A stretch of 64,000 bases of DNA from Pelomyxa schiedti (Eukaryota > Protista > Evosea), in NCBI GenBank assembly GCA_020536535.1, contig JAHLWZ010000815.1:53099-117098 (forward strand). The letters are read 5' to 3'. Positions 8,168 through 44,476 of the stretch are shown here, piece by piece. The notes under the pieces are model-generated. The model saw nothing but the letters and a program-made list of their open reading frames with translations. It was not told the DNA's origin and ran no database searches. A program made the position numbers and the translations under genes. Numbering within the stretch: the first letter of the stretch is position 1; every line of letters begins with the position of its first letter.

Positions 8168-8761
8168 GAGGAGTGCTTGGCCCACTTAGGTGGAGCTCAA
8201 ATGCTGTCATGGTTCCCAAACAAATCTACTCATCAATCCTGCATTTACGTGGTCCCTTGCCCCCGCAGGATTGCTTCCACATGCCCAGAGGGTCAAACCT
8301 CTGGGACGGAGGAGATCCTCAGGGGAATAACGGGGGACTCCAGTCCAGAGGGGGGCGCCCTTTGGCCTGAACTCTACTTCCGTTTTCCCAGTGTCACAAG
8401 ACGAGGTCCAGAGACTCCGGGGGCTCCGGAGAGGGACTGGACCCCCCGGGGAGGATCAGCCGCACAGGGGGCGCCTGTGGGTCCCTCCCTGACCCCCTTG
8501 GCCAACTTTTCACTAGCCCTCAGATTCGCCGGAGACCCCCACCACAGGGCCTGCGGCGGCCCAGTCTGGGGGCTAGCCGGCCAAGGGGGGCCCCGAAAGA
8601 CACACCCCATATTCTAAAATGACTAATAGGCATGTGTGCCGCTCTTGGTCTCCCCCCAATCCCCGATGGGGTTGGGAGCGAGTCCAAAAGAAAGGGCGGC
8701 ACGCAGAGCCTAGAATCCCGTGTTGTTCAATCTCCGGTACTGGTGGGTTGGGCACTCCTCA
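8168..8761 (+). ncRNA. Unidentified structured ncRNA-1 (about 594 nt), telomerase-RNA-like candidate
   Basis: 20-bp terminal stem 8167-8186/8742-8761 with 5 G-U pairs, which is strand-specific. More than 10 further internal stems. DUSE-like element upstream and T10 downstream. Intergenic, with no credible ORF. Confidence 0.85.
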
Positions 8762-8771
8762 TTTTTTTTTT
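8762..8771 (+). terminator. Oligo-T (T10) Pol III-type terminator of ncRNA-1
   Basis: T run immediately after the 3' strand of the terminal stem. Confidence 0.7.
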
Positions 8772-17041: not shown

Positions 17042-18929
17042 ATGCAGGAACGACCACGTACACACATCACACTGACGGCGACCGTGGCCGTGTTCGTCGT
17101 GGTGTGGGTGTCGGTCAACATCGTGATATGGTATGCCTACAGCCCCGACGACGGCGACGACGGCCGCTTCGGCTTCAACGACCACAACGCGTTCTTCAAG
17201 TCCCGCCGCGGCGCCCCCGCGAACACAGGGGCGCCTGCCCGGGGCAACGCCGACCTCGGCGCTGGCGGCGCCGCGGTAATTGTGGGAGGACGAGCCGACG
17301 AAGACGACGACGGCGGCGACGAAGGAGGGAGTGCGGCGAGAGAGGCGTGCGATGTGGTGGACGTGGTTTACACGTGGGTGAATGGAAGTGACCCTGCCCA
17401 CGAGAAGCTCTTGGCAAGGTACCCCAATCCCTCCCCTCCCCTGCCCCCTTTTTCTCCCCCTTTTTTTCCCCCCTGTTTTAAATTCCCGCTCTTCCATTTC
17501 ATTGTTTTGTTATGTGCACCTTTTCTTTTTTTTTTTTTTTTTTTTTCCTTTTCCTTATATTGACTCCAAGTCACAAGAACGTTGGCTCTGCTTGGAAAAT
17601 CATGTTTCGCGACTATGGAATTTTGAGGTGTGTTCCTTGTTCCTTTTGCTACCACTTAGTGTTTCATTCTTCAGGTTTTCCATGCGGTCTATTGAGAAAC
17701 ACATGCCCTGGGCAAGAAACATCATCCTAGTTACAAATGGACAGGTACCTCTCTATCCTCTGTTTGTGTTCTATGTCTGGCATTGGTCCTTTTCCCGATT
17801 AATGAAACCTCCTTATTACAGATCCCCACTTGGGCAAACATTTCTTCACCACGGTTGAGATGGGTCACACATGACCAAATTTTCCCCCACACCAAGGATT
17901 TGCCCACTTTCAATTCAAATGCAATTGAGGCACACTTGAGTAAAATCCCAGGTAGGAGAGCAGGGAATAAATCCAATTCCTGACAAACAAACAGGAATAG
18001 CACCTTGCTTCATATACATGAACGATGATTTTTTTTTGGTATGGCTTCTCAAGTCCACAGTTGTATTAATAAAATTGTCTCAATCACCTTTCCAAGATGC
18101 AAGATGTGGAAAAGTCGATGTTTGTTGACACGAAGACTGGACAACTGAAGGTTTTCCTTGTTAAATGAAGTGCTGTGTTGGAGGGGAACTAATTCTTCAA
18201 ACAGCTCTTCATGGAGAATGCCCAGTATGCACACCACCCTCAAGAACCTTGTAAATATTGAACTCAATAAAGTCAAACAACCCACATCGAATTCAAGGGC
18301 CCCTGAATATGAGAAAGGCAAGACAAATGGGTGGTTCAGGTCCATTGCATACTCCAATGATCTCATCAATCAGTACTACCACCCGGAAGTAAATGAAACC
18401 GTCAAGCACAACTATGTTGGACACTATTGCTATTTCATTGACAAGGAAATTGCGGACACAATGTACAAAAGATGGCAAGTTGGTATGTCAGACTCTCCAG
18501 AAAATTGTGCATTTCTTTACCCACTCACTGGGCAACAGAATTTGATAGGACTTCAACCAACCGGTTTAGAGCTCCAGATGACACTGCGTTCCCTTTTTTG
18601 CATGCCAATGTGGCTCTCGAGGAATTTGGTGCCACAGTATGCTGCCAGTCCCCATCTTTTCCATGTATAATTCACATTTTCCATAGAGGAACCAAGGGGT
18701 ACCCAATGGAGGTGGGGCATGGACATCAAACCACACCAAGAATGTAGCAACATGGAACCGCATCATATCACGGAAACTGGTCTGTGTTGTCTTGCAAGAC
18801 AGGATTGACCTTGCACTTACCGCCGATGAAGAAATAAAATACCTAGAACAGCTGATGTGCAGTGTCTTCCCAACCAAAAGCACAGTAGAGAGGCATGAGC
18901 AACCAAACCCCTGTTCCTCATACAAATAA
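17042..18929 (+). CDS. Stealth-family hexose-1-phosphotransferase, type II membrane protein
   Basis: N-terminal TM segment, CR1 DVVYTWVNGSDP, and CR2 RFSMRSIEKHMPW..IILVTNGQ..PTFNSNAIE..IYMNDDFF. Confidence 0.9.
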
Positions 18930-18974
18930 ATCCAGAAATAACACAAACCAAAGATTCATTCCCAAAACAAAAAC

Positions 18975-18981
18975 AAAAAAA
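18975..18981 (-). terminator. Oligo-T (T7) Pol III-type terminator of ncRNA-2
   Basis: A7 on the plus strand directly abuts the terminal stem. Confidence 0.7.
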
Positions 18982-19424
18982 GAGAAGTGGCATCAGTCAG
19001 TGATAGGACCACATAGTTGGTTTGACTGAGGTCCATAGCAGGGTTTAGGATGACCCCGGACCCCAGATGACCTCCGCAGACCCCGTCCCCCGCCCTTTTT
19101 TGTGGGCAGCCAGATGGAGGTGTTTCATTGTCTGTCCCCGCCGTTCGCCCCGAGAGGCGCCCCCCGGCCCCTGAGCCGGCGCCACGGCGAGCCAACCCTC
19201 CGCCACGCGGGCCCCCGGGAGGGCTCAATTCGCAGCGGCAAGCGGACTCGGCACGGCGCCCAGGGGGCGGGTGGCCGGCGGGGGCATGCCCCCTACGCTA
19301 CACTCGTGGACATGCCCGGACGAGGGCGGGACCCGCGGTATCATAGTTGGATGAGTAGTTCTGATGTCAGATATCGATGTAACTATGCCAGTATTGGAGC
19401 ACTGGGTGTATTGGGCCACTTCTC
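18982..19424 (-). ncRNA. Unidentified structured ncRNA-2 (443 nt), probable paralog of ncRNA-1
   Basis: Perfect 10-bp terminal stem GAGAAGTGGC/GCCACTTCTC. A 21-bp stem (19338-19318 with 19095-19074) has 5 G-U pairs on the minus strand. Several more stems, DUSE upstream and T7 downstream. Shares the 5' GAGRAGTG start and CTACTCATC with ncRNA-1. Confidence 0.85.
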
Positions 19425-19480
19425 GAGGGTCCCCGCTGCAATGGAGCGTTTTATTTCCGTGGCGTTTCTCGTGGTTGGGA

Positions 19481-19488
19481 TTATGGGA
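19481..19488 (-). promoter_or_regulatory. DUSE-type upstream element TCCCATAA of ncRNA-2
   Basis: Matches WCCCAYAA, starts 64 nt upstream of 19424, and is followed by a second TCCCA. Confidence 0.75.
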
Positions 19489-19571
19489 AGTTTTTTCTTT
19501 CGTTTGACAAAGCCGAAGGAACAAAACGACAACAAAGGAGTAAATTTGGTCAGCCTGTTTGTTGTTGTGTT

Positions 19572-21227
19572 TCATTGTGCTGCCAGATAGGAGTCCGTTC
19601 CTGTATAGAATGACCAAATCCTGAAGTTGATGGAGCCCTCGGAGAAGTCCAGCAGTCCTTGGACAAAGAGATGCAGCTGATTACTAACGAACAGCATGTT
19701 CCCCTTGTGGTCAAAAGCTAGAGTGTCTGGCCAGACCATTGATGAAGAGTCCTGTAATGAATTATGAGAAAAATGGTTGCGTGTTCTGGGTGTACTTACA
19801 CTCACTAGTGAGAGCACATCGCCATTCCAAGTATTAATACCACTGCCCTCTAAAGAACTCAGGTAGAGCGTACCAGTATCATCAAAAGCAAGGCCGTCAC
19901 TTGCAGACAATTTGTCTCCAATGTAAACGACTGCTGATTCCAGTGTTGACTCCGATGTGGTGAAATCACGTAACAGAGAAGTGGGAATAGAGTAGAAGTC
20001 ATGGCTGGTCAGTGGACACCATACAAGTGTATTCAGGTCAGTTGATAAAGCAATACCATCTATTAAAAGTGTCAAGAAAGGAATTCACATGGAAAAATAC
20101 CTGCTCCAGTTTCCATTGGTGCATCAATAAGAACTTTGTCACCATTGATTGTTATCCACAAGTCAGGATCCGCTTGGGTACTTGAGTGCTGAATCACAAT
20201 GTAAAAACCACCATATGTTAATTGGTTGTTACATTTTGCAAAACTCTTCTAACGGTATGGCTAAGTATATCAAACACTAACAGTGCCGGGAGCAGTGGCT
20301 TTGAAGAGTCTATTGGGATTCCTGAGTCTGTGATATAACTTATAGTAGTTTGACACTTTGAAGAAAGCCACACAAATGCTTACGCAAATTGGTTGTGCAG
20401 ATCAAGGACAATGTCATTTCTTGAAGAATTGATGAGAACAAAGTTTATACCTATATACACACAAGAAAGAATCTGTTAATGAAGCTTCCGCTTCAGAAAA
20501 GGTATATCTTAGTCTCTCAGCACCAGTCTTGATATCCCAAACAACGAGTTTAATGGCACCTGTTCACCTTAAGAGGCGCGTTTACTAGTTTGGTGTTGAC
20601 CTGGTAAAGCAGCAGCACTATTGACCTTCCCCTGGTCTAAAACCCAAATATGATCATAGGGGTCAATTTCAAAGCCAAGTACACTCTAATGCAAAAGCCA
20701 TGGGAATGCAAGTAGGGGAAAAGGAAAAAAAACTTGTAAAGCAGTAGAGTTTCCCTCTTCATTCATCTCCCATGAAGGGAAAGGCTGGAGCAGTGGTTGC
20801 CCGTTTTTCATAACAACTTTGCTTAAAGTGGCTGGTACATTTTCATTCCACCTGGGTACTATTGATGTCAGTTTGCCCAATTTAACATTGATTGCTCATG
20901 TAACCTGAAACAAAAACGTCACCATCAGACGAAACTTTCACGCCAGCTGGCATGCAGTTCTTTTCCCTTCAAGAAAGAAAGAAAAAAAATTAGCAGGAAC
21001 GACATTCCAAAAAACCATCACGATACCCGCTGGTTGCAATCCATTGTGCGTGTTGTTGCTCACTCTCCCACGTAAAGTCTAGGGCTCGCCACTCATACAA
21101 CACCGTAGGCGTCACTACATCGCGTTTAATAACGGTTACCACAGAACGTATAGTGAGATCCATATGGAGAGCTACCGCACACCGCAGCACCGACCAGCGA
21201 CGCAACAACAACCAACACCAACTTCAT
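19572..21227 (-). CDS. Major royal jelly protein / yellow-family secreted beta-propeller
   Basis: Signal peptide MKLVLVVVASLVGAAVC, then YEWRALDF, VPRW..NVPATL, LQPFPSWEMN, WVLDQG, DGIALS, SDGLAFD and WPDT. Confidence 0.88.
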
Positions 21228-44141: not shown

Positions 44142-44476
44142 TTAAAAAAAATCCAGAATTGTCCTGGGGAGGAATTGACTGAGACCAACGGTAAACAGTT
44201 GTACAGCCACCATCCCTGGTGTAAGTGTCCGGTCTTGGTTCGAGGGGCAATCGGCGTGTGGGACTGATTACCTTTGCAGTTGGTTGCTAAAACCGTGACT
44301 GTCTCGATCTTTTTTCGGGACTGCAGACTGCGGAGTACCGGTGGATTCGGAATTGTGGGATAGGAGAAGTGAGGCCCAGAAGCCATTGACTGAGGAATTG
44401 CCTCCCTTGGGGTAGTGGATTCTCTCAAGGATTGTTCTCGAGACAACGAAGCTCCTACCGAGAAATTCTCAGCCAT
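44142..44476 (-). CDS. Possible small hypothetical protein (about 90 aa, one intron)
   Basis: ATG at 44476 and a plausible GT..AG intron; no domain recognised. Confidence 0.25.

Follow-up and report, generated by a model that had tools for sequence, protein, structure and literature searches.

Positions 18,975 to 19,488 of the window (the whole 64,000-nt stretch of Pelomyxa schiedti DNA that was analysed) combine a promoter-like element, a self-complementary start and end, and an oligo-T run, all on the minus strand. The question raised by this locus is whether it is a gene for a non-coding RNA, as the original prediction proposed under the name ncRNA-2, and if so, to which kind of RNA it belongs. 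Archamoebae are almost unexplored for non-coding RNA, and here the 5′ end of the RNA has been precisely mapped while no family model recognises it. We consider it probable, on all of the evidence, that ncRNA-2 has a gene of its own, of RNA polymerase III (Pol III) type and belonging to a two-gene family, and that its product is a stable and structured non-coding RNA of 443 nt. It is not RNase P RNA, RNase MRP RNA or a Class I RNA, nor is it a recognisable 7SK, Y, vault, telomerase or small nucleolar RNA (snoRNA). The features of the locus are collected in Table 1.

Table 1. Features of ncRNA-2 and location of its paralogue, in coordinates of the window (helix and loop assignments are predictions)
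Feature	Position	Strand	Basis or remark
ncRNA-2 transcript, 443 nt plus a few terminator U	18982..19424	(-)	contig 18983-19424, uncovered flanks, single copy, no Rfam family
DUSE/USE-like upstream element, core CCCATAA at -63..-57, extended form CCCATAATCCCAA	19475..19488	(-)	sequence
A/T-rich box AAATAAAA at -32..-25, putatively TATA-like	19449..19456	(-)	sequence
Terminal helix P1, 5′ strand (RNA 1-10), GAGAAGTGGC	19415..19424	(-)	perfect pairing with RNA 434-443, probability 1.0
Conserved 9-mer CUACUCAUC (RNA 67-75)	19350..19358	(-)	predicted single-stranded, in loop closed by 38-44/77-83
Helix H3, 5′ strand (RNA 87-107), contains GGUCCC and the 15-mer RNA 90-104	19318..19338	(-)	fold
Central GC-rich variable domain (RNA 108-329)	19096..19317	(-)	72-86% G+C versus 44% in the genome
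15-mer RNA 260-274, contains shared GGGGGCGCC	19151..19165	(-)	perfect complement in ITS2, ~90 nt before the large-subunit 5′ end
A-rich run and H3 3′ strand (RNA 320-351), includes conserved AAAGGGCGG	19074..19105	(-)	fold, comparison
Terminal helix P1, 3′ strand (RNA 434-443), GCCACTTCTC	18982..18991	(-)	perfect complement of GAGAAGTGGC
Oligo-T run (T7) adjoining the terminal helix, Pol III-type terminator	18975..18981	(-)	sequence
Paralogue ncRNA-1, predicted RNA of 594 nt; box CCCACAA 8104-8110, T10 8762-8771	8168..8761	(+)	sequence features, fold

Transcription and boundaries of ncRNA-2

Parts of the stretch are present in 11 public runs. The most informative is a single-cell transcriptome run (X2) with a contig of 453 nt that spans 18983-19424 and continues past 19424 for another 11 letters, CCCATGTACTC. 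The SMART template-switch oligo, whose 3′ end has these letters as its reverse complement, is added at the 5′ end of an RNA. Since the letters are fused to the contig at 19424, the 5′ end of ncRNA-2 lies there, on the minus strand, precisely as predicted. The length of 443 nt is the distance from this mapped end to the terminator, the 3′ end being a predicted one whose exact base the contigs cannot show. In a second run from the same sample there is a piece corresponding to 19000-19351, bounded by Nextera adaptor letters. Within the region examined (18300-20100) no transcriptome contig covers 19425-19531 or 18849-18982.

The neighbouring genes are transcribed as well. Upstream on the minus strand lies the mRNA of an MRJP-family protein, whose contigs end at 19532 or 19597 and have had an intron removed (19751-19798); the downstream gene, on the plus strand, is spliced too (intron 18637-18686). 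With spliced contigs for both neighbours and no coverage of the intergenic flanks, the signal comes from RNA and not from carry-over of genomic DNA into the RNA libraries. That ncRNA-2 might be the 3′ UTR or read-through of the MRJP-like mRNA can likewise be practically dismissed. The MRJP-like gene does share its strand with ncRNA-2, and the contigs of this gene stop only about 110 nt short of the ncRNA-2 start, but the template-switch junction falls exactly at 19424, the interval 19425-19531 is uncovered in both runs, and ncRNA-2 and the mRNA are found on separate contigs. The original prediction had named two findings that would speak against it, namely the lack of a minus-strand transcript or a place within the UTR of a neighbour; both were checked, and what was found is a defined 5′ end with uncovered gaps on both sides. 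The X2 contig, the junction and the bare flanks thus establish a discrete RNA gene on the minus strand with the predicted start. ncRNA-2 is a separately transcribed gene, neither UTR nor read-through.

The contig of ncRNA-2 has a greater depth than those of its neighbours, a depth that can neither rank genes nor serve as an expression level.

The RNA is also found outside this sample. A freshwater metatranscriptome contains a contig of 264 nt that is identical to ncRNA-2, and a wastewater run contains 179 nt with 2 changes, one of which is U347C. Counting the X2 sample and three more, four independent studies contain ncRNA-2 in an intact or nearly intact form. A DNA search of the 52-Mb assembly found it in single copy, and Rfam has no family for either ncRNA-2 or ncRNA-1, whether at the gathering score or at E values up to 10.

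The elements that had been predicted to frame the gene, a DUSE, a start that pairs with the end, and a T7 run, are all present. The sequence TCCCATAATC occupies 19479-19488 on the minus strand; with +1 at 19424, this places CCCATAA at -63..-57, close to the -64 given originally. The AAATAAAA box has a positional counterpart in an A7 run of ncRNA-1. The G+C content of ncRNA-2 is 64%, that of the surrounding genome about 44%. With CCCAYAA at about -60, an oligo-T end, no coding potential and a defined 5′ end, the gene falls into our working class of Pol III type-3-like genes. It is most likely transcribed by RNA polymerase III, judging by its terminator and by the similarly built RNase P and MRP genes (see section on known RNA classes).

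Predicted fold and kinship with ncRNA-1

The predicted fold of the minus strand has a z-score of -4.0, and none of 100 shuffled sequences is as stable. Since the opposite strand gives a good fold as well (z -3.2), the strand cannot be assigned from folding, and both strand and ends come from the RNA data. The structure described here is predicted from one species, and by this model ncRNA-2 appears to be a stable structured non-coding RNA. Locked in the 10-bp helix P1, the ends of the RNA would leave a free 3′ U tail of the type bound by La or LARP7. P1 is followed by a hairpin at RNA 20-37 and by the loop that contains the conserved 9-mer.

The 21-bp stem with five G-U pairs that had been noticed in the sequence is recovered as helix H3 (RNA 87-107/330-351), which has exactly 5 G-U pairs, one bulged A and pair probabilities of 0.98-0.99, and encloses the GC-rich domain. 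Two further helices of the original prediction are borne out, GGGCATGTCC/GGGCATGCCC at RNA 108-117/134-143 and CCGCCG/CGGCGG, the latter as CGCCG/CGGCG at RNA 145-149/282-286. The pair TCAGTCA/TGACTGA is present in the sequence, but the minimum-energy fold pairs 359-372/381-399 instead, forming a 3′ hairpin within RNA 359-399. The sole informative natural variant, the U347C of the wastewater run, would convert the G91-U347 wobble of H3 into a G-C pair. The GC-rich expansions that seem to separate the conserved elements resemble those in the rRNAs and the MRP RNA of Pelomyxa schiedti.

The paralogue ncRNA-1 lies 10 kb from ncRNA-2, is also single copy by DNA search, and has a fold z-score of -6.2. 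The motifs listed as common to the two RNAs are real. Within the 64-kb window, CTACTCATC and AAAGGGCGG each occur only inside these RNAs. The 9-mer CUACUCAUC is identical in ncRNA-1 (8226-8234), and in both RNAs GGUCCC comes next, at a distance of exactly 16 nt. Nucleotides 25-44 of ncRNA-2 and 28-47 of ncRNA-1 agree at 16 of 20 positions, and CCAMAARAAAGGGCGG is also common to both. These blocks are collinear, in the order 5′ start, 16/20 block, CUACUCAUC with its 16-nt spacing and GGUCCC, and CCAMAARAAAGGGCGG; chain tests of this order gave p ~0.02, two local blocks p 0.02-0.04, and the gapped 9+6 motif alone an a posteriori estimate of ~3e-4.

The proposal that the two RNAs have the same architecture holds for the terminal helix and for a closed loop with the 9-mer. 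It does not extend further: local similarity over the whole length is at chance level, the helices that close the loop are formed by non-homologous columns, and a common secondary structure was rejected, the long-range helix of the ncRNA-2 type costing 19 kcal/mol when forced on ncRNA-1. The AAAGGGCGG strand of ncRNA-1 is predicted to pair locally instead (466-478/526-538, probability 0.98). The central GC-rich domains are differently arranged in the two RNAs, and the sequence that follows P1 in ncRNA-2 (CCAAUACAC) is absent even from ncRNA-1. By the sequence comparison, kinship is real only for the 5′ module and one A-rich motif.

The genes had also been seen as part of a multigene family. 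They are indeed related, but the family comprises only two genes and one truncated promoter copy. The latter, on the same contig but outside the window, preserves the ncRNA-1 promoter and about 25 nt of the RNA, beyond which its sequence diverges, suggesting a local duplication; the promoter-plus-start pattern otherwise matches one unrelated site in the genome. A pattern of the loop plus GGUCCC matched only the two genes and one chance site in the genome, and a scan of metagenomes with a pattern of P1, loop and GGUCCC gave no match. It is quite likely that ncRNA-1 and ncRNA-2 constitute a new, lineage-specific family of two genes, marked by the 5′ module with its CUACUCAUC loop and by a helix strand that combines an A-rich run with GGGCGG.

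Complementarity to pre-rRNA

Our best current guess as to function, a lead rather than a finding and a tentative one, is that ncRNA-2 might act in the nucleolus on pre-rRNA. The rDNA was located via the 5.8S sequence and a conserved small-subunit pattern, and 17 kb of pre-rRNA were compared (5.8S, ITS2 and large subunit on contig C544, small subunit on contig C59). Four stretches of ncRNA-2, of 15, 15, 13 and 13 nt, are perfectly complementary to parts of these 17 kb. One 15-mer (RNA 90-104) is complementary to an expansion hairpin of the small-subunit rRNA, the other is the ITS2 match of Table 1; of the 13-mers, one (RNA 326-338) has its complement in the opposite strand of the small-subunit hairpin and the second (RNA 331-343) in another small-subunit site. 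Two matches of at least 15 nt were found in 0.25% of shuffled sequences, and four of at least 13 nt in 0 of 400. The longest match of the control sequences was 12 nt (sense), 11 nt (mirror) and 13 nt (complement), and the complement control also yields two 13-mers.

A 15-mer and a 13-mer from the two strands of H3 correspond to the two strands of one hairpin, a GC-rich expansion located a little upstream of AAACTTAAAGGAATTGACGG, a conserved small-subunit sequence. There is a likeness in the sense direction as well, between the strands of this hairpin on the one side and H3 of ncRNA-2 and two ncRNA-1 motifs on the other, so the relation may be one of mimicry as much as of pairing. All three 9-mers shared by the paralogues have a complement in the pre-rRNA: CUACUCAUC in a conserved large-subunit segment (G000:C544:3952-3960, the only one in the 17 kb), AAAGGGCGG in the small-subunit hairpin, and GGGGGCGCC in ITS2. 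The background rates for their G+C classes are ~0.04, 0.10 and 0.7, giving a joint p of ~0.003 in tests that overlap one another. GC-rich 9-mers often match the GC-rich rRNA expansions, in either orientation. Gapped alignment scores against the pre-rRNA are only ~2.5 sd above those of shuffled sequences, the complementary stretches lie largely within predicted helices of ncRNA-2, and ncRNA-1 has no excess of long complementarity to the 17 kb.

A specific form of this idea, which must be regarded as rather doubtful, is that ncRNA-2, and through the conserved motifs also ncRNA-1, might be a new pre-rRNA chaperone made by Pol III and standing outside the snoRNP classes. Helix H3 would swap strands with the giant GC-rich expansion hairpin of the small subunit, and further pairing, by other elements, would involve the 3′ part of ITS2 and the conserved large-subunit segment. 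At these sites the RNA would serve as a folding or processing chaperone, or would compete for the factor that binds them, and it might owe its evolution to the need to handle the oversized rRNAs of Pelomyxa.

U3, U8 and snR30/U17 are abundant RNAs with complementarities of 9-15 nt, single-stranded or helix-opening, to several distant sites in pre-rRNA; snR30 targets expansion segments, and U8 targets ITS2 and the 5′ region of the large subunit. ncRNA-2 resembles them in its short complementarities to several pre-rRNA sites, here a statistical lead only. Unlike these box C/D or H/ACA snoRNPs, it has neither set of boxes, and its ends are paired like those of a Pol III RNA. If the complementarities are functional, ncRNA-2 would act in ribosome assembly without belonging to the snoRNPs, in connection with an extreme expansion of rRNA.

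Comparison with known RNA classes

In its layout the ncRNA-2 gene is like the RNase P and MRP genes of Pelomyxa schiedti. RNase P RNA is encoded at G000:C676:50003-50354 (91 bits with the RF00009 model) and RNase MRP RNA at G000:C811:110023-110515 (81 bits with RF00030; 493 nt against a model of 266 positions). CCCAYAA is found at equal distance (-63/-56) upstream of both of these genes and of ncRNA-1 and ncRNA-2, and all four have a GAGUG-like start, a terminal helix and an oligo-T end (T7 in ncRNA-2, T8 in RNase P, T10 in ncRNA-1, T11 in MRP). ncRNA-2 would thus have an external promoter of the snRNA type, with CCCAYAA near -60 and an A-rich box near -30, laid out as in the RNase P and MRP genes, with which it also has P1 and GC-rich expansions in common. 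In RNase P RNA a P4 strand is accompanied by CUACUC, of which UCUG/CAGA followed by ACUACUC in ncRNA-2 is reminiscent, but the CUACUC of ncRNA-2 lies near the 5′ end and not beside the 3′ strand of P1, and no CR-I/CR-V pseudoknot can be drawn. That ncRNA-1 and ncRNA-2 are themselves the RNase P/MRP pair was rejected, as the true genes lie on other contigs with strong scores and neither ncRNA matches either model.

The layout had originally been compared with that of dictyostelid Class I RNAs. These are highly expressed RNAs of 42-65 nt that start with AAG, end with CUGU, have an 11-nt motif by the 5′ stem strand and are encoded by dozens of genes (Kjellin et al. 2021, PMC7919456). The resemblance is there, in that both are amoebozoan genes with a CCCAYAA-type DUSE about 60 nt upstream, a stem joining the ends and oligo-T after the gene, but it is generic. 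The same arrangement also marks the RNase P and MRP genes, so it is the general layout of Pol III-type genes in Pelomyxa schiedti. Membership of ncRNA-2 in Class I fails on length and terminal residues: it is 443 nt long, starts with GAGAAG, ends with CUUCUC and a U tail, and has one paralogue.

Could a known class be masked by divergence and by the GC-rich insertion of 220 nt? We regard it as unlikely that ncRNA-2 is a very diverged 7SK-like regulator, a vault- or Y-type RNA or an RNA of the U3/U8 type. Pelomyxa schiedti does inflate its structural RNAs; besides the MRP RNA, the small-subunit rRNA has ~1,500 nt between two conserved motifs that in typical 18S rRNAs are only ~600 nt apart. The Rfam models nevertheless found the inflated MRP and RNase P RNAs with the scores given above, and neither ncRNA at E values up to 10. 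ncRNA-2 is too long for a Y or vault RNA, and the C/D or H/ACA boxes are missing from the places where they are required: UGAUGA is missing downstream of the P1 5′ strand, the RNA ends in CUC with a U tail, and sub-threshold snoRNA matches, at noise level, fall only outside the RNA. With 7SK, a metazoan Pol III type-3 RNA bound by LARP7 and MePCE, ncRNA-2 agrees in promoter type, size class, pairable ends and U tail. A gene for the Bin3/MePCE capping enzyme is encoded in the Pelomyxa schiedti genome, and it is plausible that ncRNA-2 is bound by La or LARP7 and carries a gamma-methyl cap. Unlike 7SK, ncRNA-2 matches neither RF00100 nor RF01052 and lacks the 5′ hairpin with GAUC repeats, GAUC occurring nowhere in the RNA. 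HEXIM went undetected in a Pfam search, which weighs little since a blank is not proof of absence, and 7SK is not known to occur beyond animals.

A telomerase RNA is a further candidate, and finding one in an amoebozoan, or a 7SK analogue, would fill a long-standing gap. The loop around CUACUCAUC would in this case be the template for telomere repeats of 12 nt, the paralogues specifying related repeats; both loops have a 4-nt redundancy at a period of 12 nt (AAUC in ncRNA-1, ACUA in ncRNA-2). A telomerase RNA must exist, since the genome encodes a telomerase RNA-binding domain. A review reports none for Amoebozoa and describes Pol III telomerase RNAs with USE promoters in plants and ciliates (PMC12133305), and LARP7, a partner of telomerase RNA elsewhere, has been reported from other amoebozoans (PMC7928011). 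Like ncRNA-2, the plant and ciliate RNAs have a USE and an A/T box, oligo-T, a helix closing 5′ and 3′ ends, and a single-stranded conserved stretch beside a small hairpin. The identification is nonetheless improbable. No telomere repeat matching ncRNA-2 was found: tandem copies of the predicted 12/13-mer repeats are missing from the 52-Mb assembly, and a match to the core in 76 metagenome contigs comes in every case from an unrelated minisatellite, whose spacers are AAT/AGT or others and which mostly lies inside the contig. ncRNA-1 and ncRNA-2 would, moreover, dictate different repeats, part of the supposed template of ncRNA-2 is in a predicted hairpin (54-57/62-65, probability 0.97), and no Rfam telomerase family matches. 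The sequence of ncRNA-2 has no U-rich tract for a triple-helix pseudoknot, and pseudoknot and triple-helix elements are also missing from it, though a predicted structure by itself carries little weight. Telomere-like repeats in the assembly are confined to short interstitial TTAGGG arrays of 3-4 units; no TTTAGGG or TTTTAGGG arrays were found in the genome, and neither RNA contains a TTAGGG/TTTAGGG template of at least 7 nt except for CCUAAACCCU, which is at chance level. Matches to (GGGATT)n were rejected as telomere repeats, being plain microsatellites.

It is also unlikely that ncRNA-2 is a fast-evolving Pol III transcript with no conserved role in trans, for example a decaying duplicate under a strong external promoter, whose rRNA-like pieces are shared GC-rich expansion modules. 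Such an origin would be in keeping with a family limited to a single contig and to two genes plus a truncated promoter copy, with whole-length similarity at chance and a GC-rich domain that is not conserved, with a GAGUG start and P1 that resemble those of RNase P RNA, and with the likeness of H3 to the small-subunit hairpin in the sense direction. Against it stands the 5′ module, which has kept the 9-mer and the 6-mer at an identical 16-nt spacing, together with the 16/20 block, amid saturated divergence. The preservation of ncRNA-2 across the four independent studies, with 2 changes in 179 nt, and the improvement of a predicted pair by the single informative change (U347C) also argue against it.

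The promoter box is not confined to these genes. In its extended form, CCCAYAATCCCA, it occurs 201 times in the genome, against 4 occurrences of the reversed control, and this number, about 200, suggests that a considerable number of Pol III-type RNAs in the lineage await description.

Surroundings of ncRNA-2 and a partial ncRNA-1 copy

The ncRNA-2 gene, together with its promoter, occupies most of the 713-bp gap between a MRJP/yellow-family gene and a gene whose protein product contains a Stealth CR1 region (see table). A further unit on the same contig carries the ncRNA-1 promoter and ~25 nt of the ncRNA-1 5' end, both nearly identical to the paralogue; beyond this point the sequence is unrelated and includes a long inverted repeat, and no terminator was found nearby. 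This unit appears to be either a duplicate that was truncated or the breakpoint of a rearrangement.

Features in the window and in the P. schiedti assembly (C, contig; L041, piece of C815)
Feature	Location	Strand	Remark
MRJP/yellow-family protein gene	window 19572-20075	minus	upstream of ncRNA-2, same strand
Stealth CR1 protein gene	window 17042-17563	plus	downstream of ncRNA-2, converging
ncRNA-1-like partial copy	C815:37247-37318 (L041:1501-1572)	minus	~16 kb before window start
Further promoter box, TCCCACAATTCC, with candidate small RNA	window 44146-44359	minus	with A-rich box
RNase P RNA	C676:50003-50354		352 nt
RNase MRP RNA	C811:110023-110515		493 nt vs 266-position model (inflated)
Bin3/MePCE-type gamma-methylphosphate capping enzyme gene	C286:29114-29472		
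Promoter box of the ncRNA gene kind	C286:29721-29732		~250 nt downstream of Bin3/MePCE gene
Telomerase (TERT) RNA-binding domain	C931:32777-33290		encoded
5.8S, first unit	C544:127-260	plus	
5.8S, second unit	C544:20822-20955	minus	

The promoter box in the window and genome

The RNase P and MRP RNA genes share their promoter box and terminal oligo-T run with ncRNA-1 and ncRNA-2. Across the whole genome there are 201 occurrences of the extended box, CCCAYAATCCCA, compared with 4 of the reversed control, which implies that this snRNA-type element may drive of the order of 200 genes. The further box in the window is followed, ~150 nt past the expected start, by a T8 run, and marks a candidate small RNA; it had no match in Rfam and gave no fold signal (z -0.6). 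Another box of this kind lies close to the capping enzyme gene.

Telomere repeats and rDNA

The genome encodes a telomerase RNA-binding domain, and the only telomere-like repeats found are interstitial TTAGGG arrays of 3-4 units. The metagenome contigs matched in the telomere-repeat scan (L050-L125, mostly JAABU* records) contain a dispersed element that recurs across many contigs of a single data set. In it, degenerate 12-nt GATGAGTAGAAT-type minisatellites adjoin a flank that is conserved; this element has no relation to the Pelomyxa amoeba.

The rDNA contig, C544 (22.5 kb), is palindromic, with two units of 5.8S and large-subunit rRNA arranged tail to tail. Its ITS2 is ~680 nt in length, and the large-subunit rRNA is GC-rich and very long.
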